Shown piece by piece: positions 1,986-53,119 of a DNA stretch of 64,000 nt. A program made the position numbers and the translations under genes. The notes beneath the pieces are model-generated. The model was not told where the DNA came from. It saw only the letters and a program-made list of their open reading frames with translations, and made no database searches. This DNA comes from Macrostomum lignano (lineage: Eukaryota). The first letter of the stretch is position 1. Each line of letters opens with the position of its first letter. The stretch covers positions 1 to 64,000 of the forward strand of contig NIVC01002014.1 of NCBI GenBank assembly GCA_002269645.1, read 5' to 3'.

Positions 1986-5962
<3,977 letters not shown>

Positions 5963-20262: not shown

Positions 20263-23200
20263 TCAGCTCAGGCCATGGCCTCCACCGTCGGTTTCCGGCC
20301 GCTCCCGCGAGCGCCCGGGCAGCAGGGCAGTGAGGACCGGAACCACTCGTTCGCGCTGCGGATTCTGCGGTTCAACAGGTTTTGCAAGTCTCAACTTTCT
20401 GATCTCAGCTTCTATTCGTAAGCTACTCACACAACTTACTTCTCCAGCTTCTTCACTACATCTTCAGACACTCGTTCGTACGCCAGAATTTTCGGGACTG
20501 CCCAGTACTCCTGAGAATCGAATGAAGTGGAAGCAAAATGAGAGGAACGGCGGTAATTTCTTCCACGAAGAGTCAACATGCATCAATGGAGCTGACAAAA
20601 AGTGTGTCAAGAGTTGAATCGGCCCAACTCACCCACTTCAGCTGCATCTTCAGCTTCGTGGACGGTCCCCTGATGGCGACAATGAGCAGAAACTTTAACG
20701 ACAGAGTGGCGCTCTGCAATTAAAGTTGGTTAGCTGACGCTCATGAGCGGAAATCAAGGATTTTACACGCCTATGCAAAGCGGGCCACTCATTAACTGCT
20801 TGCGTGGTCACAGAAGTCAGTCCATGTAAAACTCGTTGGGGCTACCGAAAGCACGATGCTACTGAAGTCGCAATTTTGTCAGTAGTCAGCGGCTCGTTAC
20901 CTACAGTCGCAATAGAAAGTGGCCCATCTTGTGTGTCAACCACACAAGACCAAAGGGCAGTCACTCACCACAAAGGCGATGAACAGCACCAGTCTGTACA
21001 GAACCCGTCGGTCCTCACTGAGGTCCTGCAATCGGACAAAAACGGACAGACTGTCCGACGTGAAGGCCAGGATGGCGGCTGTGCTGAACACGCCAGCGTA
21101 GCTCAGGCAGTCCAGAATGCCGCCCCAGATGCCGAGGCCCTGGGACGGCCGGGGCAGCGGGCGGCGGTACCGGAGGAGAAGGCGGCTGGCGTCCAGGCGG
21201 AGGTCCACTGTGAGCGCGACGAGAGCGGCCACCGGGGCCAGGAAGCAGGCGGAGCCGAACAGCTGCAGAAAAATTGATGATGAAGCCCCAGGTGACATTT
21301 TGGGTGAGGTTGCAGGTGAGGTTGCAGGTGAGGTTGCAGGTGATGTTGCAGGTGATGTTGCAGGTGATGTTGCAGGTGATGTTGCAGGTGAGGTTGCAGG
21401 TGATGTTGCAGGTGATGTTGCAGGTGAGGTTGCAGGTGATGTTGCAGGTGATGTTGCAGGTGATGTTGCAGGTGATGTTGCAGGTGATGTTGCAGGTGAG
21501 GTTGCAGGTGATGTTGCAGGTGATGTTGCAGGTGATGTTGCAGGTGAGGTTGCAGGTGATGTTGCAAATGAGGTTGCAGGTGAGGTTGCAGGTGAGGTTG
21601 CAGGTGAGGTTGCAGGTGGCGATAGGATAAAGAGAGAAAAGACGTTGAAATTTTTCTAGCATGTTCAGGTTAATGACAACTAATTTTTATTCAATATTAT
21701 ACTCAGGGAGTAAAGCTCACTATTCGCGAAAAATTTAAAGACCAATGTTTGCCGTAAAATACTATTAGTAAGATAATAAGACAATGAGTTAATTTTTTAC
21801 TTGATTGTGCTCAAAGTTTCTAAATCTCTTAGTATTTAATTGATAACAACCTATATTCTATTGCTTTTTACACAACAGCCTTGATTTATGGCACCGATTC
21901 CGATTCGGAACCAAACAGCTGAACTCACCACCATATAGCCGTAGAGGATCATCTTGTCCAGGTACTCAACGTCGTCTCCCTCGTTGGCCATGTGACGCTG
22001 GCAGGCGAACTCCAGAAACTCTTCCAGCTGTTGGTCGTCTGCGTTTCCTCCGTGCCTGCGAGCACCGGGCTCCTTCAGGCGCATCTCCTGCTCATTCAGG
22101 CAGCTCAGCTCGACGCCGTACAGCTGGCTCTTCAGACAGGGGCAGAAGCAGGCCAGCAGTGACTTGAAGCAGCGTAGAGCGCTCCAAAAAGGGTGGCAGT
22201 GCTTGACGAGCCTGCGGGGCGTCAGATTGGTTGGTTTATGACTCATGAGCAAAGGATCCGTGACTCCGCAATCTGCTCTAAAGCAGCTGGGGAAATCTTA
22301 CGGCCAAAGATAGTCGATGAAACTCTTCAAAGCCGATCGGAACACGATGTAGTAGGTGGTGAGCAGGTTGAGCTGGCTGAAGCAGTCCACTCTGGTTCCG
22401 CCCAATTCGCAGTGGTCCGTGAGACTGCCTACACGGATTCCGCCCTGAGAAAAAATAATGCAAACTTTTCTGATGGCGCATACCGGAACACAGCGCACAC
22501 CATGCACATAGCACACACCATGCACATAGCACACACCATGCACATAGCGCACACCATGCACATAGCGCACACCATGCCACTAACACACACCATGCACATA
22601 GCGCACACCATGCACATAGCACACACCATGCACATAGCGCACACCATGCCACTAACACACACCATGCACATAGCGCACACCATGCACATAGCACACACCA
22701 TGCACATAGCACACACCATGCACATAGCGCACACCATGCACATAGCACACACCATGCACATAGCGCACACCATGCCACTAACACACACCATGCACATAGC
22801 GCACACCATGCCACTAACACACACCATGCACATAGCGCACACCATGCACATAGCACACACCATGCACATAGCGCACACCATGCCACTAACACACACCATG
22901 CACATAGCGCACACCATGCACATAGCACACACCATGCACATAGCACACACCATACACATAGCGCACACCATGCACATAGCGCACACCATGCCACTAACAC
23001 ACACCATGCACATAGCGCACACCATGCACATAGCACACACCATGCACATAGCACACACCATACACATAGCGCACACCATGCCACTAACACACACCATGCA
23101 CATAGCGCACACCATGCACATAGCACACACCATGCACATAGCACACACCATGCACATAGCACACACCATACACATAGCACACACCATGCACATAGCACAC

Positions 23201-28516: not shown

Positions 28517-31500
28517 GATTAAATTCTGATGAAAGCTATCTGATTGAGCAGCTCACCAGGTGGATTCGCTGAGCCCCGGTCAGCGGAATGCCATCGCAGG
28601 CATCTGTCAGGTTCTGGACGACTTCGCTTGGCATGTCTTCATCTGGCAGAGTCGAGCCCGGGACCTCCTTTTCTGGCCCGCCGTAGAACAGGTGGATCTT
28701 GGCCATCAAGAAAGGCGTGCAGATGATATCGGCTGGTGTGAGCGAGGGTTGGATTGCAGACTGGATCAGCTCTGTATAAGAAAAGATTTATTTACTCCTA
28801 AGCTCAGAAAGCGGGCTTACAGTTGGCCTCATCCAGCACGTGGTCAGGCGGGTTTGTCTCTTCGACTCCGTCAGTCAGCAGGCCGGAGCAGCAGCCGCCC
28901 CAGGCCACAAAGTTGCTCACCGACGTGTTGTGCAGGGTCAACCGCTCTCCGCATGGCTGCGGTGCCAGCGTTTGAGTTGCCATGGTTTCAGCAGTGTGAC
29001 CCCTGACACACCAGTCTGGCCTCCAACACACCAGTCTGACCCCTGACACACTAGTCTGGCCTCCGACACACCAGTCTGACCCCTGACACACCAGTCTGAC
29101 TCCTGACACACTAGTCTGGCCTCCGACACACCAGTCTGGCCTCTGACACACCAGTCTGACCCCTGACACACCAGTCTGGCCTCCAACACACCAGTCTGAC
29201 CCCTGACACACTAGTCTGGCCTCCGACACACCAGTCTGACCCCTGACACACCAGTCTGACTCCTGACACACCAGTCTGACCCCTGACACACCAGTCTGGC
29301 CTCCGACACACCAGTCTGACCCCTGACACACCAGTCTGGCCTCCGACACACCAGTCTGACCCCTGACACACCAGTCTGGCCTCCGACACACCAGTCTGAC
29401 CCCTGACACACCAGTCTGGCCTCCGACACACCAGTCTGACCCCTGACACACTAGTCTGGCCTCCGACACACCAGTCTGACCCCTGACACACCAGTCTGGC
29501 CTCCGACACACCAGTCTGATCCCTGACACACCAGTCTGGCCTCCGACACACCAGTCTGACCCCTGACACACCAGTCTGGCCTCCGACACACCAGTCTGAC
29601 CCCTGACACACCAGTCTGGCCTCCGACACACCAGTCTGATCCCTGACACACCAGTCTGGCCTCCGACACAACAGTCTGATCCCTGACACACCAGTCTGGC
29701 ACCTGACATACCAGTCTGACACCTTACATACCAGTCTGACACCTGAAATACCAGTCTGACCCCTGAAAAATACGAGTCTGACCCCTGAAATACCAGTCTG
29801 ACCCCTGAAATACCAGTCTGACACCTTACATACCAGTCTGACACCTGACACACCAGTCTGACACCTGACATACCAGTCTGACACCTGACACACCAGTCTG
29901 ACACCTGACATACCAGTCTGACATCTGGCACACCAGTCTGACACCTGACACACCAGTCTGACACCTGACACACCAATCTGATACCTGACATACCATTCTG
30001 ATCCCTGAAATACCAGTCTGACACGTGGCCTACCAGTCTGACACGTGGCCTACCAGTCTGACACCTGACACACCAGTCTGACACCTGACATACCAGTCTG
30101 ACAACTGACATACCAGTCTGTCCCCTGACATACCAGTCTGACACCTGACATACCAGTCTGACACCTGACATACCAGTCTGACATCTGGCACACCAGTCTG
30201 ACACCTGACATACCAGTCTGACTCCTGACATACCAGTCTGACACCTGACATACCAGTCTGACACCTGACATACCAGTCTAATACCTGACATACCAGTCTG
30301 ACACCTGACATACCAGTCTGACACCTGAAAAACCAGTCTGACACCTGACAAACCAGTCTGACACCTGACATACCAGTCTGACACCTGACACACCAGTCTG
30401 ACACCTGACATACCAGTCTGACACCTGACACACCAGTCTGACACCTGACAAACCAGTCTGACACCTGACATACCAGTCTGACACCTGACACACCAGTCTG
30501 ACACCTGACATACCAGTCTGACACCTGACACACCAGTCTGACACCTGACATACCAGTCTGACATCTGGCACACCAGTCTGACACCTGACATACCAGTCTG
30601 ACACCTGACAAACCAGTCTGACACCTGACATACCAGTCTGACACCTGAAAAACCAGTCTGACACCTGACATACCAGTCTGACACCTGACATACCAGTCTG
30701 ACACCTGAAAAACCAGTCTGACACCTGACATACCAGTCTGACACCTGACATACCAGTCTGACACCTGACATACCAGTCTGACACCTGACATACCAGTCTG
30801 ACACCTGACACACCAGTCTGACACCTGACATACCAGTCTGACACCTGACAAACCAGTCTGACACCTGACAAACTAGTCTGACACCTGACACACCAGTCTG
30901 ACACCTGACATACCAGTCTGACACCTGACACACCAGTCTGACACCTGACACACCAGTCTGACACCTGACACACCAGTCTGATCCCTGACACACCAGTCTG
31001 ACACCTGACACACCAGTCTGATCCCTGACACACCAGTCTGACACCTGACACACCAGTCTGATCCCTGACACACCAGTCTGACACCTGACACACCAGTCTG
31101 ATCCCTGACAAACCAGTCTTACACCTGACACACCAGTCTGACACCTGACATACCAGTCTGACACCTGACAAACCAGTCTAATCATCTTATCATCTGAACA
31201 TCAGACTACTCTAATCATCTGAAAACAGACAGTCCAATGCCACTTACACCTTTGAGAGGCAGCTCCATCAAAAGAGCCTCAGCCTTCCTGAGCAGCACCA
31301 GCGAGTTCGCTCTGAACCCCAGGTAGTGAGACACGAACTCGCAGGACTTCCTGTCACCCTTCTCAGGCGGGAATCTCATTGACCTGCTGGTCACAGTGAG
31401 GCCCCGGGCCTCCGCGCCCAGCTTGAAGTAGCGACGCGCCCAGTGCTTGGCCTGGCAGCGCCGGTCCTCGGCGAAGGCGCGCACCGTGGCATAGTGCAGT

Positions 31501-31532: not shown

Positions 31533-32631
31533 GGCTGCTCTGCTCGGGTGCCGTTGCCCTGCCGTCTTTGGTTTCGAATTTGCAGAATTTGTTTTGGCTC
31601 AACGCTCTGCTGCTGGGCTCGCATTTTTAGTTGTTTTGCATTTGAAGTGAAGCCGAAAGTGCTCGCGAATTGTGCCAACTGATGAGGTGAGGGAGTCGGG
31701 CAAGAGGTGGCGTGATGCCCAAGCTGAACAATGACTGCGAGTGCCTCAGTACTCAGGCCAAAGCACAACGAAGACAACTTTCCAACCCCAGTTTTTGTGT
31801 TCAGCTGAGACAAGTGTAATATTGGAGTCGCCTTTTGGCCTTTTATTACGCTAAGATGGCAGTCCTCGCTGCTCGCTCAGCAAGTGTGCAAAGCACAAAA
31901 CAGACTCACCCTGCCTCCTCGCAGCTGCCACAGCGGCCGAAATCATGCTGGAAAAAACAGGAATGGGAGCCACGAGAAAAAGCTCTCAGGTGTGTTGTAA
32001 TGCGCTGGCGTGGCAGAAATTCAGATGCACTTTTCCTGACATTGACTTGCACCGGAACACGCGCTTGGCGCTTTTTACTTTCTCAGAAAGCCAGAGAGCC
32101 GTCCTTCATGCAGGCAGCACTCGGGGCCCTCATGGAGAAACAATGCTCGTCTTCCCTAGCCGCCGTGTAGGTTTCCAGCGGACCCTGCTAGTTATATTGT
32201 CTGTCGAGAGGCTGCCCAAAACTTTTCTTTGTCTGCAACTGCTGACGAGACTCTATTGATTAGAGTTCTAGCGACTCTCCTTTCTGCTAGTGCAAATGGA
32301 AGGCATGACTGCCACTTCCACTAAAGTTAAGGGCGCTTGTATAAACTGTGACTAGTTTTCAAAAACAATGCCGTTCTTGCAAGCTAAAACCTCATCACCA
32401 TAGCAAAAATTTTGCACTTTTTCTTAACACACTCGCTTTTTAGCCGTCTCCGGTGCAACAGGAAAAAGCTCTTCTTTTTCAGTGACAAGGCAACACCGCA
32501 AGCCTCAACGCCGATTGGACGACGCCGCCTACGCGTTAACTTTGTCATCCCAATGCAAGCCTACTGCTCAAAAAGTAATTAAGAATCCCAGCAGGACAAG
32601 AGGTATTCCACACAGACACGGTACCGTCAGA

Positions 32632-33405
32632 ATGCTCACGGAGCTGCTCCTGCTCACCCTGTTCACAGCGGGCGACAGCCTGTGCCCGAACCGCACCGTC
32701 TTCACTCACAGGCTCATCCGGTTTTGCCTGAAACCGCAGTTCCTGTTCGAGCCGAGTTACCCGGCCCGCAGCGAGAAGCTCTGCGCGCTATTCTGCGTGG
32801 AGAGAGGCGACCGGTGCCGCGGCTTCCGGCTGACAACTGAGAGCGCCTCCGGCTGCCAGACCTTCGAGTTCGACAGGTGCAGCCACAGAGTCAACCAGAA
32901 CTCGCCCTGCACCCGCTCTGAGTGGGCTTTCGTGAGGCAGCAGCCGGGCCTGCCTGAGGGCCAGCTCTGCCCTGCCGGCTTCGCCAACGGTTTCTCCGGC
33001 TCCGTCTACAAGATGGTCGGCGTGTCGAGCTGGACGGACGGCCTCAACAAGTGCAACTCGGAGCCCGGACTCGTCAAGTTCGCTGACGCAGGCGACAGGC
33101 CGGAAGTTGAGCACATCGGTACTTTCAAGTCCACCCTCAATGGAGACCTGAGCTCGTGGATGCGCAGCTTCTACCTGGGCGGTTACCGGCCTTCCCCGCT
33201 CAGCTCCGGCACCTGGTACTGGCGCGACTGCAACGCCACCATCCAGCCCGAGGCGTGGGGCAGCGGCGAGCCGAATGAGAACGGTCTGCACAACCGGACG
33301 AACATTTGGTACGGTTACTCCAGCAGCTTCGGCCTGGACGACGAAGTGGAGTCCGGAGCCTCTTGGGTCAGAGCTCTGTGCGAGTGCGTGAACCCATTCG
33401 ACTAG
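32632..33405 (+). CDS. Secreted PAN/Apple-like + C-type lectin-like protein 1 (intronless, 257 aa, EPN motif)
   Basis: Signal-peptide-like MLTELLLLTLFTAG; PAN-like Cys pattern CALFC...CRGFRL...CQTF; CTLD features SWTDGLNKC, FYLGG, WYW, WGSGEPN, ALCE. Confidence 0.85.
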   Translation: MLTELLLLTLFTAGDSLCPNRTVFTHRLIRFCLKPQFLFEPSYPARSEKLCALFCVERGDRCRGFRLTTESASGCQTFEFDRCSHRVNQNSPCTRSEWAFVRQQPGLPEGQLCPAGFANGFSGSVYKMVGVSSWTDGLNKCNSEPGLVKFADAGDRPEVEHIGTFKSTLNGDLSSWMRSFYLGGYRPSPLSSGTWYWRDCNATIQPEAWGSGEPNENGLHNRTNIWYGYSSSFGLDDEVESGASWVRALCECVNPFD

Positions 33406-33944
33406 GATATGACCGCCTTGGGAGCTCTGCGGATCTCCGGTGCCCAGGCCTATCAAATACGCAGATTTGTGTCAAATGAGTTTTTAAAAAAGCAAAATGC
33501 CTTTTACACCCAACAATTACACAGATAAACAGATATTCTGACTCAAAATCGGTTTCTGAAGATTGCATCCAGCATCGTACCAAAGTCAATTCAATATCAA
33601 ATTTGTGATTGTTTTCACAGTGCCTGTTTAGATCTGCTTGCCTCAATAAATACTGTACTCAATGAATACAGTGCCAATTTACTGTCGTGACAGGACCAGG
33701 TTCGAACCTGCGCCTCTCGTGCCAATTAACTTGACTTTGTCTCGCTGGTTGGATCTCTTCCGTAAATTTTTGCGCATAGGTAACCGTAAATCTTGGAATG
33801 AACCTCCTAGCAGAGCCGGGCTGCGTCAGTGTGCCAGCCGACTTCACAGTGTTCTGGGATTTTGAATAAAAGGGAATTTCTCTCTCTCTGGCCAGAGCTT
33901 TGGTGATGGCTTCTCCGAAATTGTTGCTAATTTCACGTGGCCTA

Positions 33945-34467
33945 GTTTAGTTTAGTTAGTTTTAGTTTAGTTTAATTTAGTTAAGTTTAGTTTGTTTTAG
34001 TTTAGTTTAATTTAGTTAAGTTTAGTTTGTTTTAGTTTAGTTTAATTTAGTTAAGTTTAGTTTGTTTTAGTTTAGTTTAATTTAGTTAAGTTTAGTTTGT
34101 TTTAGTTTAGTTTAATTTAGGTAAGTTTAGTTTGTTTTAGTTTAGTTTAATTTAGTTAAGTTTAGTTTGTTTTAGTTTAATTTAGTTTAGTTTAGTTTGG
34201 ATTATTTTAGCTTAGTTCAATTTCGTTCATTCAGTTTAGTTTAGTTTAGTTTAATTTAACTTAGTTTAGTTTAGCTTAGTTTAGTTTGTTTTAGTTTAGT
34301 TTAGTTTAATTTAACTTAGTTTAGTTTAGCTTAGTTTAGTTTGTTTTAGTTTAGTTTAGTTTAGTTTAGTTTAGTTTAGTTTAGCTTAGTTTAGTTTGTT
34401 TTAGTTTAGTTTAGTTTAGTTTAGTTTAGTTTAGTTTAGTTTGTTTTAGTTTAGTTTAGTTTAGTTA
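33945..34467. repeat. (TTTAG)n with a 35-bp higher-order unit
   Basis: tttagtttagtttaatttagttaagtttagtttgt repeated, then simpler pentamers. Confidence 0.92.
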
Positions 34468-34625
34468 CTAGACCAACCACAGTAGCTCAGATTAGTTAGG
34501 CAAAATAGCGTGTTCGTCCCAGTTTTACTACTAACTGAAGCCGCATTGACTTGTGCTAGTAGTGATGAGTGAATATTATGGTCTTGGTTTTTCTATGATA
34601 TTCTGGCCTTCCAGTCTTCCCATCT

Positions 34626-34935
34626 TGCAACTCAGAGACCGGACTCGCCAAGTTCGCCCACGAAATCGACAGGCCGGAGGTCGATCACATGCACACTCTG
34701 AGAAATTTCTCCAATGTAGACCTGAGTTTTACGATGCGCGACTTCTACATTGGCTGTTACCGGCCGCACGAAGGCGACTCGCACAACAGGAATGTCTTCA
34801 CTGTGAGGTTTACTTCGGATTTAAAAAAAATTGGGACTTTAACCGGAAATGCGTGGACGACGATCAAGTGCATAAACAGTCGGTGGTTGAATGTTATGTG
34901 TCCGAGTGCTCCTTTTGGTCTCCGCGAAACTAATT
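34626..34935 (+). pseudogene. 5'-truncated C-type lectin fragment most similar to paralog 2
   Basis: tgcaactcagagaccggactcgccaagttc... encodes PGLAKFAHEIDRPEVDHMHTLRNFSNVDL..RDFYIGCYRP. It then jumps to EGDSHNR, deleting the SPLSSG..QP segment. Later remnants gcgtggacgacga and tccgagtgc. No start codon, signal peptide or PAN part. Confidence 0.8.
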
Positions 34936-35172
34936 GCCAGGCACTTCGCTTCGACATCGATAAATTGGTAAAGATTTAACTGTGGCCTGTTAGCAAAACT
35001 ATTTTAAAATACGAGTATATACAGTCCCTAGCAAACTCTGCACTGCTATGCGTCCGTTGTCCGACAAACGAATGCACTTGCTGCGATTTGATGGAGCTTT
35101 TCTGTGAACACCTGCACTTGAAGTAGTTCATTAGCGGTTTGCTATTACTGGTCAATGCTAATCATAAGAGTT

Positions 35173-35449
<277 letters not shown>

Positions 35450-36159
35450 GAACACAATATTCGATATGTTATGCCGAATTCTTACGTTGAGCCGCTCGGA
35501 GTTAGGCAATGTCATTTTAAGCACCGTGTTTTCCGTCCACTGCCTCTTTTTGGATGCAGATTCGCGCTCCTAGCAACGGCAGGAGTTCTAAGCAATCAAA
35601 ATATGGGATACAATTTCCAAATTGTACACAGGAACTGGAAATATTTGAAGGTTGCTAAGTGGAAGGATCAGAGCTAGTCGAGGGGTGTGAAATGACTCGT
35701 ACATTGGTTGGGTTTGAAGTGCTTGAAGGGGCAAGAGAAGCACTGCAATCCTGCCACCGTCTGTCCCACTCGCTCTGCCCTACGACAGATGTGCATCTCT
35801 GCTTGTTGGCCGGACCCCTCGGTTGTCAAGCAAATCTCGGCACATACTCCGCCTCAACGACCTGTCAACCGAATCGTCTTGCTTGGTTGGCTTCGTCTGT
35901 AGTACGAGACCAGCTGTGCTATACAATATGCGTTCGTGCGGCCTAACAGAATGATTGACAGATTTGAAGTTACCTGAGAGTGTGTATCTAGATAATTAAA
36001 TATGTGATTTAATTTTTCTTCAATAAATTTTCAAACATTACTTATTAGCATAATGGAAGGTTAATATCAAGCGAGAATTCAATTTAATGGCCAAGGTCGC
36101 AAGTGCGCATAGCCAGTAAAGCCAGCTTATCTGAACTAGCATCCAATTTTTGGCCGGGA

Positions 36160-36410
36160 CTGCATCGAGGCCAAGTACGTTTCAAGATTCGTTTTCATAA
36201 AATCGTGCAAGAGATGCGCCGCGGACTGCAATTTATTGAGTTGTCTTCACAACGATGGGTGGACACTGCAGACTGTTTTTGTTCGACAAGTGCAGCACGA
36301 AGGGGTGCGCAAGTGCAGCTGCAATCGCGTCGCCAAGCTGTACGTGAGGCGACAGCCGGGCTTGCGACCGGGCGCCTTGTGTCCGGCCGACTTCCATCTC
36401 GAAAGGTGCG
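36160..36410 (+). pseudogene. Diverged, frameshifted PAN-domain part of a lectin-family paralog
   Basis: Pieces in different frames: RDCIEAKYV (cf. RFCLKPQFL), GHCRLFLFDKCS (cf. GCQTFEFDRCS), LYVRRQPGLRPGALCPADF (cf. AFVRQQPGLPEGQLCPAGF). Confidence 0.6.
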
Positions 36411-37159
36411 CTTTTGTTTCGTTTAGCGTTCTTCAGTGTCTTTTGGGTTGCCTGTCTGCCAGCCATCGATAAAGAAGTGTTCCCGCTTTGCTGAACCTTG
36501 TTCGAACATTGAGTACGCAAGGACACAGTCACATAAGGTGCACTTCTGCCCTCGGTGCTTGTCACTGATCTTGTGGTTTTGGGCTGGTTCGAATGACCGG
36601 CCCCCGAGTAATATTCCTGCAACACGGGCAGCTCAGCCGAAGACGCGGGCTACCCTCCGAGCAGAGCGCGCACAATCGATCTCGAAAGACCGTCTCTCGT
36701 ATTGTTTCAAACCCGAGTTGCGAGTTTTTTGAAGGGTTTGGACCGGCCTGACAAATTGTTCTGCGAGCCTGCCTTTTCCATTCAGATTTCTAACTCATCC
36801 CCATCATTTGTAAATGCGGCAATGCTAAAAACGTTAGTAAAGCCGGGGCCATCAACCATGTCAAGACAATCCGAGAGGACTTGGTCCAGTGGTTGTCAGA
36901 GTCGGCGTATAGCATTAGTGCTCAGTCCTGGAGAGTGGATAGGAACGGCTGGTGCAACGGAGCGGCAAGAAGAGTACAAAATGACAAGAAGCAGAATTTT
37001 CTGTTTCAAGCGCTACCATGCCTGACGCCGGCTCCGAGCGTCCGCAGACCTGCGCTGTCGATGGCTTCCTTGCTTCAGCTCAGGGGAGCTGCTGAAAACA
37101 ATGCAAGCAATTGTGTTGTTTTGCGCCGGTAAAAACACTCAACTCAACCACGCCCTCAA

Positions 37160-37910
37160 ACCCTCTGGCTACTCAAATCCTCTGGCTACTCGAACCATCT
37201 CGCTACTCAAACCCTCTGGCTACTCAAACCCTCTGGCTACTCAAACCATCTGGCTACTCAAACCATCTGGCTACTCAAACCCTCTGGCTACTCAAACCCT
37301 CTGGCTACTCAAACCCTTTGGCTACTCAAACCATCTCCCTACTCGAACCATCTGGCTACTCAAACCATCTGGCTACTCAAACCCTCTGGCTACTCAAACC
37401 CTCTGGCTACTCAAACCCTTTGGCTACTCAAACCATCTCCCTACTCGAACCATCTGGCTACTCAAACCATCTGGCTACTCAAACCCTCTGGCTACTCAAA
37501 CCCTCTGGCTACTCAAACCATCTGGCTACTCAAACCATCTGGCTACTCAAACCCTCTGGCTACTCAAACCCTCTGGCTACTCAAACCCTTTGGCTACTCA
37601 AACCATCTCCCTACTCGAACCATCTGGCTACTCAAACCATCTGGCTACTCAAACCCTCTGGCTACTCAAACCCTCTGGCTACTCAAACCCTTTGGCTACT
37701 CAAACCATCTCCCTACTCGAACCATCTGGCTACTCAAACCATCTGGCTACTCAAACCCTCTGGCTACTCAAACCCTCTGGCTACTCAAACCATCTGGCTA
37801 CTCAAACCATCTGGCTACTCAAACCCTCTGGCTACTCAAACCCTCTGGCTACTCAAACCCTTTGGCTACTCAAACCATCTCCCTACTCGAACCATCTGGC
37901 TACTCAGACC
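37160..37910. repeat. 17-bp satellite (tggctactcaaacc[c/a]tc) with a 272-bp higher-order period
   Basis: The variant tccctactcgaa recurs at 37336, 37438, 37608, 37710, 37880. Confidence 0.92.
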
Positions 37911-38467
37911 ATCTTGATGCTCAGACCATTTCGCTACTCAGACTATGAACATTTTGTCTCCTAAGGTGGCAGCCCGAATGTTCGATAGCTGACGAGAGGG
38001 CTGGGAACGGCACCTCTGGATTGCCTCCAGTTTGAGCAGTTCACACAGACTTAGCAATGCTAAGCGTTATTGACGTTTCAGTGCTCGAGTCAGTGACGCG
38101 GGGGCAAGGGGTGCTAATAGCAACCGCTGCAGAAGAATTTAGCGGAAGCACGATCGAATTACCTGTGACATCCGGACCGAGGAAGCCTGGCAGAGGCTTG
38201 CAAAAAGATTGCCTGACAATTGTGCTAACAGCAGTGCAGATGCAGACAGCGTTTTCTTTTGGCTAGATTCAGGAATGCCGGTTTGTCTGAGACATTTTTT
38301 CAAGTTTTTGAATGGGCCCTAAAGTTCAGATTTCAAACGCAGTGGGAACAGCAGCTTAGTGGCGCGAATAAATCTGCTTCAAACGCTAAAAGGAGTTCTC
38401 AAGTAACTTGCAATCCCAGCATGGGTGCTCGCTCGGGTAGCCTTTTGTTTTGTTAGGCCTGTTCGGC

Positions 38468-38787
38468 CGTCTGAGGTTTTACCTGACCGGCGTTGTGTTC
38501 CAGGTGGTTGTCGAGACCGCCCTGCTTTACAATGTCAAAACCTGAACACTGATGGACTGTTTAATCCGATCCGTTCAAACGACCTGTTGCGCGGTCGGCG
38601 ACTCCCTCTGGCAAAACCATTCTGTGCAGGAGGCGCTGCTGCTGACGCTGCAGGCACCCACCGACGGGAACAAGCGCACTTGGCGCTTCGTCGACTGACT
38701 GCTACCCGACATCCGCATTCGATCCGCCCCAGCCTATGCTCGGGCCCTAGCCAGAGACGGCTTCCGTTTTTCTAAAGACCTCGACTA
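38468..38787 (+). mobile_element. Decayed 3' fragment of an RTE-like non-LTR retrotransposon ORF
   Basis: Frame with stops reads VFQVVVETALLYNVKT*TL...SVQEALLLTLQAP..KRTWRFVD*LL.D. This resembles the post-RT LLY.AE.WTL region of RTE-clade LINEs, as recalled from memory. Confidence 0.5.
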
Positions 38788-39284
38788 AACAGCGTAGTTT
38801 GTTGCGCTGTTTCTGTTGTCGTTGCATTCACTGATTAAATGCACAATAGGTGTCACCACAATGCCTTCAATACGAGCGTAGTCGGGGTTTTGAGTGCTTG
38901 AACCCAAACACAACTGTCCTAGCCGTTGTGGAGTAACACAAATTCCCATCACTCAGCATGTGTATTGAGATGCTTAGCACAAGAGCACTGGACTGACTAA
39001 ATAGCCTGAACGGTGTTTCGCGAAAACTGACTGCAGAATTATTTACGTGCGCACCTATCTATTTTATTCTACTATTAGGTCGAGGGTGAATAATATCACA
39101 CAAATGCTTTCAGATTGACGCCAGACTTTGGCTCATCGAGCGTCATGCTGATATCCGCTGCAGCAGCTGTCAAATTGCAAATGCAATAGCTCAAAACAAG
39201 AACGCCGAAAATACTGAAAAACCGACAGACAGTCATTGTTTTGCGAATGTTTGGGCCAAGTCACCTAGCACGGAGCAAGTCGTT

Positions 39285-39331
39285 TATTGGCTTTTGCAAA
39301 ACGCAGCCCTGCATTATAAAGACAACCGCCC
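39285..39331 (+). promoter_or_regulatory. Core promoter of lectin 2 (inverted CCAAT, TATA, CCGCCCAG)
   Basis: ATTGGCTTT ... TATAAAGA (39315) .. CCGCCCAG, with the TATA 50 nt upstream of the ATG. The same three motifs occur in the same order before lectin 3. Confidence 0.6.
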
Positions 39332-39364
39332 AGCTGCTGCAGAGCCCCACTTCAACCCGAAAGC

Positions 39365-40138
39365 ATGTCTTACTGGACGGTGCTTCTCTTCTGCCTGCTT
39401 GCGTCCTGGAGCGCTGCCGTAGCTGAGCTCAGCGTCCAGCAGTTCACAAAGCACTTTATTCGGCTGTGCCTGAGGCCCGAGTTTCTCCGCAACACCCCGC
39501 TGGCCGACCCCAGCAATATAGAGTGCGGCATGGTCTGCCTCAACCGCGGCGTCCGATGCCGCGGCTTCCGACTGACTGGCGACGACGGCTCCGTCTGCCA
39601 GACGATGGAGTTCGACAGGTGCAGCCACATGCCGAACGAGGCCGGCTGCGACCGCTCCGGTTGGGCCTTCGTGAGGAGCCTGGAGGGCCTGCCGAACGGC
39701 CGGCTGTGCCCTGCCGACTTCGCCAACGGCTATCGCAGCTCCGTCTACAAGATGGTCGACGTGTCGAGCTGGACGGACGGCCTCAACAAGTGCAACTCGG
39801 AGCCCGGACTCGCCAAGTTCGCCGACGGAATCGACAGGCTGGAGGTCGATCACATGCACACTCTGAAAAATATCTCCAATGTAGACCTTGTTTATTGGAA
39901 GCGCAGTTTTTACCTGGGCGGTTACCGGCCTTCCCCGCTCAGCTCCGGCACCTGGTACTGGCACGACTGCAACGCCACGCTGGCGCCCGAAGTTTGGAGC
40001 ATAGGTCAGCCGAACCAAGGCGACTCGTACGACAGGATTAACGTCTGGCACGGCCATCCATACGGCGTGGACGACGAGGTGGAGTCGTCGAGCTACCTGA
40101 TCCGAGCTCTGTGCGAGTGCATCGATCCGTTTGCCTGA
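39365..40138 (+). CDS. Secreted PAN/Apple-like + C-type lectin-like protein 2 (intronless, 257 aa, QPN motif)
   Basis: Hydrophobic leader MSYWTVLLFCLLASWSAA; collinear with paralog 1; TATA box at 39315. Confidence 0.88.
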   Translation: MSYWTVLLFCLLASWSAAVAELSVQQFTKHFIRLCLRPEFLRNTPLADPSNIECGMVCLNRGVRCRGFRLTGDDGSVCQTMEFDRCSHMPNEAGCDRSGWAFVRSLEGLPNGRLCPADFANGYRSSVYKMVDVSSWTDGLNKCNSEPGLAKFADGIDRLEVDHMHTLKNISNVDLVYWKRSFYLGGYRPSPLSSGTWYWHDCNATLAPEVWSIGQPNQGDSYDRINVWHGHPYGVDDEVESSSYLIRALCECIDPFA

Positions 40139-42227
40139 AGCTGCTCGGAAGCCGGAGGAAGAAATCTTCTGACTTTGATTAAAGACTACAGAGTACAGAC
40201 TACAGTGCGAAGTCATCAGTAGAACTAGCTGCTGTTAACTGAGTGTGCACCAGTTTGTACCAGTTTGAAATACACAGACGCTGGCATTGACGTTCGAAGG
40301 TTGCCCCAATTATTTGTCTAGGAATCTTATTGAATATACGAGCCGTACATGGCTGCCCGACCTGGGCTGCAGAAAACTAACGTCTACTTTATACTTGGCC
40401 TGCTCCGTGGGCCTCAGTGTAAAGTATGTTAACCCAGCCCCCTCCCTTACGCCTTGCTCCTCTCCGCGGCGCCCTCTCTGCCGTGTGCTATGGTATTCTT
40501 AGACCCCTTTTCAAGCTTGGCCTTTGCTCTGCGTTTGCGGAGCTGGCCTAGTGTGAAGTAGACATTAATCCACAACCCCATAAGTAGAGACAGAAAGACA
40601 AAGGTGGCGGGATGGCGGCGAGCACAAGCAGCGACGAGTAGGGGAGGGCGACCCCAGAGAAAACGGGGAAGGAGAGGAACCAAAGGTTAGTTAATCGAAG
40701 CAGCAATCTGCTTGACGGCAGGGTGCCTGTGTTGTGCTACAGGCCGGATCACTACCCTGACTATCACAGCGAACGAGCCAAAGATGGCGTCAGTCAACTG
40801 GCCGGACTGACTTCGGACTCTGAGCGGGGGATCGCGTCAGGAGACTTAATCAGCCCGTCCCTATTGCACAGATTAATTCTCGCCAGTCCCTCAAATAAGA
40901 AAGACACGCGACTCACTCTGTTTCTTCGGGTAACAGCGGTGGCGGCAGCAGGGGTGGCTTCTCTCAATGTTCTCTCTTCAGTCTATAGAATAGACAGGTA
41001 TCTAGATTGCAGTATTAGGCGACTTATGGCTGTGACTTGCACAATTCAACCAAGGAAAGAGATGCCTCCCCTACTGCCGCTCCTGCATATATTTATATGT
41101 GCTAGCTGGTTAAGCCCTGGGGTATCGCTACCCCAGGTCCAGCTAGCCAAAATTACGATTGTCTTATCCAACAGGGAAAAAGTTACAAGTCGGGGTCGCG
41201 ATTGGAGGGAGAGGAAACAAACAGATTGGCTGGACCACCAGCCAATCGCAGGGTAAGCGAGGGGGCGCACTGGGGCCGCAGCCAGCCAAAGCCGGCTGGC
41301 CTAACAGGCAGTGGGGTGGGTGCAACTGGAGGGGGGTTGACGCAGACAGAATGGGGGGGTTGACGCAGACAGATGGGGGTTTGACGCAAACAGAATGGGG
41401 GGTTGGCGCAGGCACGCGGCCGGGGGGTGGGAGTGCAGTGCCGGGCACACTTGACTGAGAGCCAGAGATTGCTCATCGGTGCAAGTGCACCCGGGCACAC
41501 ACCTGTGAGTAAAATCTACATCGCCCGAAAGATAGCGAAAGATGGAGTCGGAGTGCCAGTCACAAAGGCAGCGAATGTCGCCTTTACGCAGACTGTGACC
41601 TGAGAAATTGCCCCACAGGGATGCCGCAGGTCGGCATGCCTCCGCTTGAACAGACGGATGAAGGTCGAGTCAGCCAACGAGACTCTGCGGGGCATTGCGG
41701 AAGGAAGACCAGCAGCTGGCGCTCCTTGAACTGGTTGGTCTTGGACTTGTCGATGGTCAGGCTGCCGGGCTAGGTAGTCCGCGCACTGACAGAAAAAGTT
41801 CACGAGCTCATGCGTTGAGCTAAGCATTTGTGATGCCTAGTCGCTAATCAGCTGCATGTGACTGTGAAGGTGAAACGCCTGCAACTGGATCCCAGACTCG
41901 AGGCACAGGAAGGCCAGTGGGGTTGCGGGTTGATGTGGCTGGTGGGTTTGCGGGTTAGTGTGGCTGGTGGGTTTGCGGGTTAGTGTGGCTGGTAGGGTTG
42001 CGGATTAATGTGTGCATCTGCACTCAAACTCACCCCAACCCAAGTAGATGATTGATGCACTATTATGTCAGATGGCCAACTTAGACGTGGCTGACTGTGA
42101 TTCACGACTCCTTTTGTGCACTTCCTGTGACATTTGTGCCACGGACATTATGAACTTTTCCTGTTTTCTGTATGTACCCTCTCCCCTTGTTTGAATCCCT
42201 GCGTGTCTGTCTGGTTCCTCATCTATA

Positions 42228-42600
<373 letters not shown>

Positions 42601-43061
42601 GTGTGACTCACCCTATTGTCTGTATCTCTCCACTGGCTATGTTCGTTCCACTGCCTTCCCTCTAAAAAACTCGGGGCGTACCCACCGGACCGTCCTATAA
42701 ATGTGCCTCTCACTCCGCTTGGGAAGGGCACCTCTTTTCCGGTATCTCTCTGCAATTCTCAGTTCAGCAGAGCAAGCTATTTTGTGCTACAAGCCAGCCT
42801 TTGCCTTTCAAATTATTACACTTCCTAACTGGCTTCGCGTCATTTCAGGAGCTGTGGGATGCTGGCCTTTCATTGGCAGATGGAGGTCTTCTTCTTTCCC
42901 ATTATCACCCGGAAGCAGGGGGATCCTAAAACGTCAGCATCCCGGGCACACACGTTGGTGCCTGGCAATGTTCGTTGCGGCAACCGTCCAACCGTCCATG
43001 AATCGAACCGACCGTTCAATCCGTCCAGCGGACGCAACCGTCTCATATCTTTGTCTTTCTT

Positions 43062-43268
43062 GGGGGGGGGGGGCATCACAAACCCGAAACATCACAAACT
43101 CGAAATATCACAAACCAGAAGAATCATAACTCCGAAAATGCTAGCAATGTTTAATGCTTTTTTGGTTTTCAGAGTTATGATATTTCGGGTTTGTGATATT
43201 TCAGGTTTATGGTGTAAATGCTTTTCGAAGTTGTGATTTCTCGGGTTTGTGAATTGTGATGCCCCCAA
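43062..43268. mobile_element. Fold-back MITE with subrepeated terminal inverted repeats
   Basis: Left end gggggcatcacaaacccgaaac.. (preceded by tt and a longer G run) and right end ..gtgatgcccccaa are inverted. Each arm is built from ~16-17 bp atcacaaacccgaaat units. Confidence 0.65.
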
Positions 43269-44968
43269 CAATGTTGGTCTCCACTTTCCTGTACATCCTC
43301 TTCGTTGGCACACGGAGGTCTTAGATAAAAATCAATGAACCGTCTCTTACCAAATAGTTTTCAGAATAGAAAATTAATTATGACCGAAATGGAGTTTTCT
43401 GACATCTTCTCCTATTCATCCCTATCAGCCATTACTTCGAGCATTTCTGGTGAGCTCCTGAGCTTGAAACTGTATGTTAAAGAAGTGACACAAGATTTAG
43501 CCGCCGGTAGGAAAGTCATAATTAAAATTCCTTCTTTAGCAATTCGCTCACCAACCATGTCCTGAAACTCAGCAGTGACACTGGCGGCTTCTAAGAGGTG
43601 GACTGTGGACTCCGCAAGGGCGCTTGTTAAGAGAGTTGTAATAGGCTAACTATATTTAACAACGGGGGCTGACGATCACTGTGTTAACGAATTGCCTCCT
43701 TGATGTGGGTTAAACGTGGCTTTAGTTTAGATCAAGTTTTCAATTGACTTGAAAAAAATTTTTGATCAACTGCTGGTCTCCAGTCACCTGCTGGAGGTGA
43801 AGTCACAGAAGTTTTAAGAATATAGCTCGTAATTGTACTACTTACAGCAGGCCAAGAAAATATTTTTATAGAAGCAGAAACGAAAGAAATTAAAACCAAT
43901 TTATCATTTTTTGGTTGTTCGCACGACTGTAAAGGACACCAAATTGCATTCTGCATCTACCTCAGATTCTGCTCTTGTACACCTGCTCAGGAATGGGCAG
44001 TGAGTTGCCTCTCGCCGGTTGTGCGACAACTTTCACTTATTAGAGTGCTCCAGGGTGCTTAAAGCCACTGCTCGTATCTAAATATGAGCAGTAAAATTTA
44101 TAGACGACACGAGCACACAGACCAGCTTTTCAGTGCGGAAAAACCCTGAAGCAAATGCCGAACGCTCTCTCTCCAAAACATTTTTCAAGTTGATTTTTTA
44201 CGGCGCAAAGACAGCCTAAGAAGGGAAGAATATTCAAACGATCAGCAGTTTTGACTTCATCTTTAAAAAGTTAAGTTAACTAGTAAAAGATTATCTCGCA
44301 ATATCGCCATCACAGAAGATTCCGTCTGGGGTTCGACACTTTTAAGAGTGCAGGTAAAGTTTCTCAATCTTAGCGAGTGACGCAACTTAGCTATGCCGCA
44401 GCAGACTTGAGTTGAGTTGAGGAATGAAGTGGGGGAGCTCACTGGCGCACAGAGTGGCGACTTTTCAATGCTGCTGGAGTAGTTTCTGAGACAAAGTCTG
44501 AGTCTCAGCACAATCCCCCTCATAGCAACTAATACGACTCAAAAAGTGCGGAGAGACATTATATTGTAATTCCTGCAAGAAGCGCGCTCTGTTGACGTAA
44601 ACAGTCCAAGAATAAAAGTACAAGTGTCAGAGAACAGGCTTAGACTTTCTGAGAAATCAGGCGACTTTAGATTGATTGATGCAAGGCTGACCTGACAGCT
44701 TGTTGAGTATGCGGTGAAAATTTCCCAAGCCACTTTTACCTGCCTGATTTCAGAGCAAACAAAGCCAGCGAGCTGGAGTTTCTGTTCCACACAGAAGACA
44801 TTATAGCATTGCTGAAACTTTTCTGCAATTTTCTTGTTTCAATTTCAAACCACCAGCGCAGAAGCAAATAGCAAATCCCCCGCCAGTGTCCCTGATTGTT
44901 CAAGCAACAGGGATGCATGCAGTCAGGCGCTGGCTTCATTTGCTGTGAAAATAGCCCAGGGCAGAGCG

Positions 44969-45006
44969 CATTGGCTTTCTTGTGTAGTATAAAGAGTTCC
45001 GCCCAG
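44969..45006 (+). promoter_or_regulatory. Core promoter of lectin 3 (inverted CCAAT, TATA, CCGCCCAG)
   Basis: ATTGGCTTT ... TATAAAGA (44988) .. CCGCCCAG, with the TATA 41 nt upstream of the ATG. Confidence 0.6.
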
Positions 45007-45028
45007 GGCCCCACCAGGATCTAAAGAC

Positions 45029-45805
45029 ATGAATCACTGGAAGCTACTTCTGCTGTACCTGCTGGGATCCAGCTGCTCTGCCGCAGCTGAGCTCAGCACC
45101 CAGCAGTTCACAAAGCACTTTATTCGGCTGTGCCTGAGGCCCGAGTTTCTCCACAACACCCCGCTGGCAAGACCCAGCAATGTGAAGTGCAGCGTAATCT
45201 GCATCAACCGCGGCGTCCGATGCCGCGGCTTCCGACTGACTGGCGACGACGGCTCCGTCTGCCAGACGATGGAGTTCGACAGGTGCAGCCACATGCCGAA
45301 CGAGGCCGGCTGCGACCGCTCCGGTTGGGCCTTCGTGAGGAGCCTGGAGGGCCTGCCGAACGGCCGGCTGTGCCCTGCCGACTTCGCCAACGGCTATCGC
45401 AGCTCCGTCTACAAGATGGTGGGCGTGTCGAGCTGGACGGACGGCCTCAACAAGTGCAACTCGGAGCCCGGACTCGCCAAGTTCGCCGACGGAATCGACA
45501 GGCCGGAGGTGGAGCACATCCGAACTCTGATGCCGATTCTCAATAAGGACTTAAGCTCCTCAAAGCGCAGCTTCTACCTGGGCGGTTACCGGCCTTCCCC
45601 GCTCAGCTCCGGCACCTGGTACTGGCGCGACTGCAACATCGCCATCAAGCCCGAGGCGTGGGGCAGCGGCCAGCCGAACGAGGGCGCCGAACACAATCGG
45701 GTCGACATTTGGTTCGATCACGACTACGGATTGGACGACGAGGAGGAGTCGCTGCCCTCCCGCCTGATCCGAGCTCTGTGCGAGTGCCTCAACCCGTTCA
45801 TCTGA
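45029..45805 (+). CDS. Secreted PAN/Apple-like + C-type lectin-like protein 3 (intronless, 258 aa, QPN motif)
   Basis: Leader MNHWKLLLLYLLGSSCSA; 217 nt identical to paralog 2 (45204-45420 = 39540-39756); TATA box at 44988. Confidence 0.88.
   Translation: MNHWKLLLLYLLGSSCSAAAELSTQQFTKHFIRLCLRPEFLHNTPLARPSNVKCSVICINRGVRCRGFRLTGDDGSVCQTMEFDRCSHMPNEAGCDRSGWAFVRSLEGLPNGRLCPADFANGYRSSVYKMVGVSSWTDGLNKCNSEPGLAKFADGIDRPEVEHIRTLMPILNKDLSSSKRSFYLGGYRPSPLSSGTWYWRDCNIAIKPEAWGSGQPNEGAEHNRVDIWFDHDYGLDDEEESLPSRLIRALCECLNPFI

Positions 45806-46398: not shown

Positions 46399-53119
<6,721 letters not shown>

Follow-up and report, generated by a model that had tools for sequence, protein, structure and literature searches.

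Segmental identity and divergence in three neighbouring PAN–C-type lectin genes of the flatworm Macrostomum lignano, a probable case of interlocus gene conversion

A 64,000-nucleotide stretch of the genome of the flatworm Macrostomum lignano (GenBank assembly GCA_002269645.1, contig NIVC01002014.1, positions 1 to 64,000; hereafter the window) holds three intact single-exon lectin genes, all on the forward strand, in which segments that are identical to the last nucleotide adjoin segments that have diverged strongly. The first of these, g1 (32632-33405), is an open reading frame of 257 amino acids with a signal peptide, a PAN/apple-like domain, a divergent C-type lectin domain and an EPN motif, and its paralogs g2 (39365-40138, 257 amino acids) and g3 (45029-45805, 258 amino acids) carry a QPN motif at the same place. 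The 5' portion of g3 is g2-like and its 3' portion is partly g1-like. A hydrophobic leader opens all three proteins, which are 58-77% identical to one another in pairwise comparison, and codon bias is strong in all three genes, with a GC fraction at third codon positions (GC3) of 0.82-0.86. An original prediction, made from the DNA letters, had proposed that segmental conversion homogenises the scaffold of these lectins while their recognition loops diversify, and it is the first half of this proposal that the analysis bears out.

In two blocks of 52 nucleotides the three genes agree at every position, at exactly the coordinates that had been predicted. Block 1 (33022-33073 in g1, 39761-39812 in g2 and 45425-45476 in g3) encodes VSSWTDGLNKCNSEPGL, which is helix alpha1 of the C-type lectin-like domain (CTLD) with cysteine C1, and block 2 (33172-33223, 39911-39962 and 45575-45626) encodes YLGGYRPSPLSSGTWYW, the WIGL-type strand together with the WxW core. 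The predicted identity of g2 and g3 over 217 nucleotides was also reproduced (39540-39756 = 45204-45420, without a mismatch), and it is the larger part of a longer tract (g2 39540-39839, g3 45204-45503) in which 2 of 300 nucleotides differ. This tract takes in the greater part of the PAN domain and continues through the first third of the lectin domain, ending at coding nucleotide 475, after ...GLAKFADGIDR. A second pairwise tract joins g1 and g3 (33162-33267 and 45565-45670), with 4 of 106 nucleotides differing, and the strings CCCGAGGCGTGGGGCAGCGGC and GAGCACATC, which had been described as shared by these two genes, are indeed confined to g1 and g3 within the whole window. Both three-way blocks turn out to be places where pairwise tracts overlap, block 1 being the overlap of a g1 tract of 53-55 nucleotides with the long g2-g3 tract, and block 2 the overlap of a 52-nucleotide g2 tract with the 73-nucleotide core of the g1-g3 tract.

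The remainder of the lectin domain is divergent. Between the blocks lies a segment (g1 33101-33171, g2 39840-39910, g3 45504-45574) that encodes helix alpha2 and a loop modelled at low confidence, and whose differing peptides had been quoted correctly in the original prediction. Downstream of block 2 comes the long-loop region with the C-terminus (g1 33224-33405, g2 39963-40138, g3 45627-45805), in which EPN or QPN is followed by LDD or VDD instead of WND and which ends in ALCEC-x-x-PF; this part is divergent except for the g1-g3 tract and an island of 17-25 nucleotides at RALCEC.

Chance is a poor explanation for this arrangement. Under a null model that asks for 17 consecutive codons to be the same in three independent sequences, given the genes' own codon usage, the observed three-way identity has a probability of 10^-8.7 in block 1 and of 10^-9.9 in block 2. 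In the 3' third outside block 2, codons for conserved amino acids are identical in 13 cases where 11.4 are expected from codon usage, and this near-expected figure indicates saturation. A stricter shuffle, restricted to degenerate codons whose amino acid is conserved, gave p = 0.069 for the longest run of identity and p = 0.0013 for the second-longest. A GENECONV-type permutation over 259 polymorphic sites found runs of 54 and 18 sites shared by g2 and g3 (p < 5e-5) and a run of 8 sites shared by g1 and g3 (p = 4e-4).

Support also switches from one pair of genes to the other along the alignment. Sites that unite g2 with g3 outnumber those that unite g1 with g3 by 120:10 up to alignment column 470, the ratio is 24:41 after column 479, and in columns 540-645, within the g1-g3 tract, it is 0 to 14. 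The maximum chi-square is 68.8, with the breakpoint at columns 470-479, and none of 2000 permutations reached this value (p < 0.0005). Synonymous and non-synonymous changes were counted by the Nei-Gojobori method; the synonymous divergence dS is 0 within the blocks and 0.02 between g2 and g3 over codons 59-132, and these tracts adjoin others in which the proportion of synonymous sites that differ (pS) is 0.6-0.8. Uniform dS or congruent segments would have spoken against segmental exchange, and neither was seen. The genes thus display identity tracts that are too long, adjacent segments that are incongruent and a heterogeneity of dS that exceeds what codon bias accounts for, the features by which interlocus conversion is recognised.

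Outside the coding sequences the resemblance disappears. In blastn comparisons of each gene with 2 kb on either side, similarity ends at the coding borders and the flanks are unalignable, much as the original prediction had said. Its claim of dissimilar flanks needs one amendment, which is that a motif of the proximal promoter (TATAAAGA..CCGCCCAG..GCCCCAC), about 50 nucleotides upstream of the ATG, is common to g2 and g3. The proximal promoter and 5' untranslated region of g2 (39286-39364, forward strand) contain ATTGGCTTT, TATAAAGA, CCGCCCAG and GCCCCAC, and the same four elements precede g3 in the same order (44970-45028), at about 85 to 20 nucleotides upstream of the ATG in this pair; the set was not found before g1. 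Within the 64-kb window CCGCCCAG is unique to the upstream regions of g2 and g3, and a strong acceptor-like sequence, TTCTTTTTCAG, lies upstream of g1 at 32472-32482. Since the flanks are unalignable and dS between the tracts is saturated, the duplications must be old and the identity secondary. Retroposition was considered as a source of homology that is confined to coding sequence and seems unlikely, since the window contains no match to a spliced-leader sequence and since g2 and g3 have TATA promoters of their own.

The proteins of g1, g2 and g3 taken alone have no Pfam match even at E <= 10, and their assignment was made at the level of the family. A profile of 13 family members matches CTLDs of solved structure, among them codakine (2e-7), mosquito mosGCTL-1, domain CRD4 of the mannose receptor and Mincle, and its N-terminal part matches the PAN domain of microneme protein 5 (1hky, E 8.4e-4). 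Four of the 13 members match PF00059 (best E 6.6e-9) and three have weak PAN_1 matches, all of them below the Pfam cut-off (best E 0.0048). AlphaFold given only the three paralogs produced an unusable model (predicted local distance difference test, pLDDT, 33), and with the 13-member alignment it produced a model of g2 with pLDDT 85.9 and a predicted template modelling (TM) score of 0.82. This model has the two helices, two sheets and long-loop region of a CTLD, preceded by an N-terminal domain of strand-helix-strand form, and a Foldseek search of the PDB returned CEL-I, DC-SIGN, Mincle and others at E 1e-6 to 1e-4 with target-normalised TM scores of 0.7-0.8. Profile, model and Foldseek therefore agree with the lectin and PAN assignments that had been predicted, and by profile and model the family has a divergent version of the C-type lectin fold.

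Mapped onto the g2 model, block 1 corresponds to residues 133-149, including helix alpha1 and cysteine C1, the inter-block part to residues 160-182, block 2 to residues 183-199 with the WIGL-type strand and WxW core, and the E/QPN motif to residues 215-217. The inter-block segment, which the original prediction had taken for a recognition loop, is therefore helix alpha2 and the low-confidence loop before the WIGL-type strand, and not the sugar-binding site. Cysteines C1 (NKC) and C4 (ALCEC) are present in all three proteins; the C2-C3 pair is absent from them at the aligned positions, and P0015 has both. At calcium site 2 the residues are EPN in g1 and QPN in g2 and g3, the position of the Glu is occupied by N or D, and WND is replaced by LDD or VDD, so that all residues at this site are oxygen donors in a non-canonical pattern. 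Sugar binding by the three proteins is plausible on this reading of the sequence.

Diversification of the recognition parts, the second half of the original prediction, finds no support in the substitution pattern. Across all pairs, pS is 0.74-0.80 and the corresponding non-synonymous proportion pN is 0.17-0.30 in the inter-block segment, while in the long-loop region pS is 0.6-0.68 and the ratio of non-synonymous to synonymous divergence (dN/dS) is about 0.2-0.3. In every variable segment pN is lower than pS, and dN/dS is about 1 in the signal-peptide region. Within the inter-block and long-loop parts dN/dS is well below 1, and no value above 1 was found in either, saturation limiting the power of this test. 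By their substitutions, the variable parts look anciently diverged and subject to purifying selection, not hypervariable.

A decayed fragment in the same cluster leads to a similar view. Besides the three genes, a tblastn scan of the whole window found two decayed pieces of the family, and the first of these, relic 1 (34626-34765, forward strand), is a promoterless fragment of 140 nucleotides that runs from the last part of block 1 through the variable segment into the first part of block 2. Its similarity begins abruptly at a Cys codon inside block 1 and stops inside block 2. The 5' variable part matches g2 at 70 of 75 nucleotides (93%), the last 23 nucleotides match g1 at 16 and g2 at 12 positions, and the parts that belong to the blocks have decayed, with 5 of 42 nucleotides differing from them, so that relic 1 itself appears to be a small patchwork of g2-like and g1-like sequence. 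Because a decayed fragment still retains the g2-type segment at 93%, this segment is not unusually fast-mutating. The 5' edge of relic 1 falls 2 codons from the intron position of the paralog P0013 (locus L005; exon 1 ends at 10447 with a GTGAGT donor), which is probably a coincidence. Use of relic 1 as an alternative exon, the role it has in the database protein P0001 described below, was rejected since g1, g2 and g3 are intronless and there is no downstream partner exon. The second piece, relic 2 (36119-36412, forward strand), is a pseudogene fragment of the PAN part from another subfamily, with an in-frame stop and a frameshifted middle, and is 64% identical to P0005; given relic 2, the cluster formerly had at least five members from two subfamilies.

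The same layout recurs at another locus of the assembly. Two family members on contig NIVC01001061.1 of GCA_002269645.1 (locus L006), at 2587-1823 on the reverse strand and 9554-10312 on the forward strand, are inverted with respect to each other and lie about 7 kb apart. From 83 nucleotides upstream of the ATG to coding nucleotide 476 they are 97.3% identical (pS 0.017, pN 0.017), and from ...GLSKFADA onward they are unalignable as DNA (pS 0.71, pN 0.41), except for an island of 48 nucleotides at the ...ICECQS.F end. Their breakpoint, at the start of helix alpha2, is within about 10 nucleotides of that between g2 and g3. This pair is an independent replicate, which places a homogenised 5' part and a divergent 3' part at two unlinked loci. 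The recurrent boundary fits two models, one in which conversion halts where it meets sequence that has already diverged, and another in which selection acts against conversion into the module that runs from alpha2 to the C-terminus.

The closest paralog outside the window (locus L004, contig NIVC01001755.1 of GCA_002269645.1, 9794-11322) is broken by frame changes and by an interruption of about 860 nucleotides after ...CNSEPGLVKSADAND, and its annotated product, P0016, is 63 amino acids long; either it is a pseudogene or it carries long-read indel errors. It matches block 1 at 42 of 52 nucleotides, and the differences include synonymous sites. Synonymous differences of this kind, in L004 as in relic 1, mean that the nucleotides of the blocks vary within the family.

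A profile of the three genes, run with HMMER in a full scan against 1.84 billion cluster representatives, found 19 proteins, of which 4 come from Logan contigs of public sequencing runs, and every named family member is from M. lignano. The sole outsider is a generic canonical CTLD protein of a snail (E 2.3e-7 with the three-gene profile), and the PAN-CTLD family, as far as these matches go, appears to be known only from this species or genus. A word-indexed protein search returned nothing for g2 and only two Logan contigs for the family alignment, exact-protein look-ups of g1, g2 and g3 returned no record, and searches of the literature on this family and on gene conversion in Macrostomum brought up nothing of relevance. 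The best match of the HMMER scan, P0001, is UniProt entry A0A1I8H3Z5 of M. lignano, an 'Apple domain-containing protein' of 3072 amino acids in which g1, both relics, g2 and g3 are chained to unrelated frames from 27808 to 62587 of the window, a span of about 35 kb. It is a chimeric, mis-fused gene model and not an independent sequence, and we rejected it as a confirmation of the assembly, since in every compared exon its mismatches to the window occur only at the ends of alignments, at splice junctions.

Several other features of the neighbourhood are worth recording. Large, near-perfect tandem arrays lie between the genes, at 28992-31179 (a 20-mer repeated 109 times), 33943-34467 (a 15/35-mer array), 35173-35449 ((TAC)92), 37155-37940 (a 17-mer repeated 46 times), 42228-42599 ((TCTG)93) and 47270-47495 ((AGT)75). 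Comparable arrays are present throughout the window, so that tandem repeats characterise the genome rather than this cluster in particular. A dispersed repeat of about 200 nucleotides occurs at 47063-47268, 61203-61408 and 21060-21268, with copies that are 69-74% identical. The reverse strand has a 563-amino-acid open frame (8694-10385) with an adaptor-complex medium-subunit domain (PF00928, 2e-11) and, at 3654-4292, an exon for the catalytic domain of a dual-specificity phosphatase (PF00782, 5e-13). Long reverse-strand open frames also lie opposite g2 (39314-40216, 300 amino acids) and opposite g1 (32788-33456, 222 amino acids), and the very high GC3 of the sense strand suggests that these are its by-product rather than genes.

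Germ-line interlocus gene conversion between neighbouring paralogs is probably the best explanation of the mosaic. The data show the mosaic with its statistical support, the fold of the proteins and the return of the layout at another locus. If non-allelic homologous recombination in the germ line repeatedly carried short stretches from one old tandem duplicate to another, then one tract of about 300-400 nucleotides would have homogenised g2 and g3 in the PAN domain and over the first third of their lectin domains, another of about 106 nucleotides would have joined g1 and g3, and tracts of about 52-55 nucleotides would have joined g1 with g2/g3 at block 1 and g2 with g1/g3 at block 2. The three-way blocks, which coincide with the part of the lectin fold that is under the greatest constraint, its core, would then be overlaps of these pairwise tracts. 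Conversion would have spared helix alpha2 and the long-loop region, either because their divergence prevented pairing or because selection opposed conversion there. That these exchanges were conversions rather than double crossovers is something we infer, as would be any direction or timing assigned to them and any role given to selection.

Several considerations weigh against this explanation. The data consist of three full sequences and one fragment of a single cluster, and the events that they record come without date or direction. The sequence of the locus rests on the assembly, and P0001, which agrees with the window in every exon compared, provides no independent check of it. The three-way block test that uses conserved codons only is just moderately significant (p = 0.069 and p = 0.0013), and constraint at the nucleotide level may act on the two short blocks.

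If such constraint were the whole explanation, then the blocks would be kept identical by a function of the nucleotides themselves, whether as RNA structure, as target of a small RNA or as regulatory element within the exon, rather than by copying. Both blocks are GC-rich, have sharp edges and show no difference among the three intact genes, as a function of this kind would predict, but the stretch that reaches from block 1 to block 2 is less stably folded than shuffled controls (z = +1.44), the alignment of the three genes contains neither compensatory changes nor covariation, and no Rfam match was found in 30-48 kb. Nucleotide-level selection is also at odds with the synonymous differences inside the blocks in relic 1 and in the L004 paralog, and it leaves the 300-nucleotide g2-g3 tract, the 106-nucleotide g1-g3 tract and the L006 pair unexplained, so that we consider it improbable.

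Another possibility is that the duplications are recent, in which case the identical parts would be the unchanged original and the variable segments would have diverged quickly through positive selection or targeted hypermutation. The variable parts do include the long-loop region, which carries the sugar-binding site in canonical CTLDs, and dN/dS is about 1 in the signal-peptide region. The unalignable flanks, however, show that the duplication is not recent, the variable parts are saturated at synonymous sites with pN below pS, and relic 1 is still of the g2 type at 70 of 75 nucleotides. Even then exchange would be required, given that g3 is g2-like in one part and g1-like in another, and there is little chance that this account is correct.

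An artefact of assembly or polishing, in which the reads of one paralog corrected another, has in its favour that the genome of M. lignano is extremely repeat-rich and that its public assemblies are built on long reads. Polishing homogenises only sequences that are already near-identical, though, and here the short blocks sit amid sequence that is strongly divergent and maps uniquely. The reading frames of g1, g2 and g3 are all intact, and the same mosaic layout is found at the L006 locus, which makes an artefact very improbable. Programmed diversification of the cassette type, in which the blocks would anchor by homology an exchange of the alpha2 segment or of the 3' lectin module, with promoterless fragments as possible donors and somatic cells as a possible setting, can point to relic 1, promoterless, 140 nucleotides long, with edges inside both blocks and itself a g2/g1 mosaic, and to the breakpoint position that recurs in two independent paralog pairs, but it is scarcely credible with a single such fragment in the window, its anchors decayed (5 of 42 nucleotides), with no array of donor copies in the window, and with ordinary homology-bounded germ-line conversion accounting for everything seen.

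A bolder idea, to which we give very little credence, is that the blocks and the recurrent breakpoint after ...KFAD form a built-in exchange point at which the 3' lectin module or the alpha2 segment is swapped among paralogs and promoterless fragments. If this were true, the flatworm would possess a combinatorial repertoire of secreted lectins, possibly with somatic chimeras, as has been proposed for snail FREPs and for sea-urchin SpTransformer.

Under germ-line conversion between neighbouring paralogs, which we prefer, the recurrent layout points to a family that evolves in two modules, of which one is a shared scaffold and the other a lectin part left untouched by conversion. This two-module pattern is a lead on how a lectin repertoire diversifies in a model organism for regeneration and reproduction. 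There are also practical consequences. The public fused gene model of 3072 amino acids is wrong, blocks of identity of at least 52 nucleotides are likely to fragment short-read assemblies and to confuse read mapping, and orthology calls for the PAN-CTLD family are unreliable unless they are made segment by segment.

Compared with the C-type lectin-like superfamily (PF00059) and the PAN/apple domain (PF00024), the three proteins have the fold, the cysteines of the C1-C4 disulfide, the WIGL-type strand, the WxW core and EPN or QPN at calcium site 2; they differ in falling under all Pfam thresholds, in lacking the C2-C3 pair and in having LDD or VDD for WND. The chicken immunoglobulin pseudo-V genes and the vlsE cassettes of Borrelia resemble the locus in that conserved blocks surround a variable segment and a promoterless fragment carries an alternative version of it, but here there is one decayed fragment, without an ordered donor array and without the logic of an expression site. 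The SpTransformer (185/333) genes of sea urchins and the FREPs of snails are likewise clustered, intron-poor genes for secreted lectin-like proteins, with mosaic sequences and abundant tandem repeats nearby. Unlike in those systems, the variable parts of the flatworm genes have a dN/dS below 1, the tandem repeats extend over the whole window, and an immune function or somatic diversification of the family would be hypothetical.

Interlocus gene conversion is well documented in tandem families, including human HBG1/HBG2, RHD/RHCE, CYP21A2/CYP21A1P, MHC and KIR. The flatworm cluster shares with these human families paralogs that lie a few kb apart, tracts of zero divergence, tens to hundreds of nucleotides long, set in old divergence, segment trees that are discordant, homology confined to the genes and a decayed copy that takes part in the patchwork. 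It is distinguished from them by its flatworm-specific PAN-CTLD architecture and by a 3' boundary that falls in the same codon region in two pairs of genes. The process is thus a well-known one, and the locus provides a new example of it in an undescribed PAN-CTLD family of flatworms.

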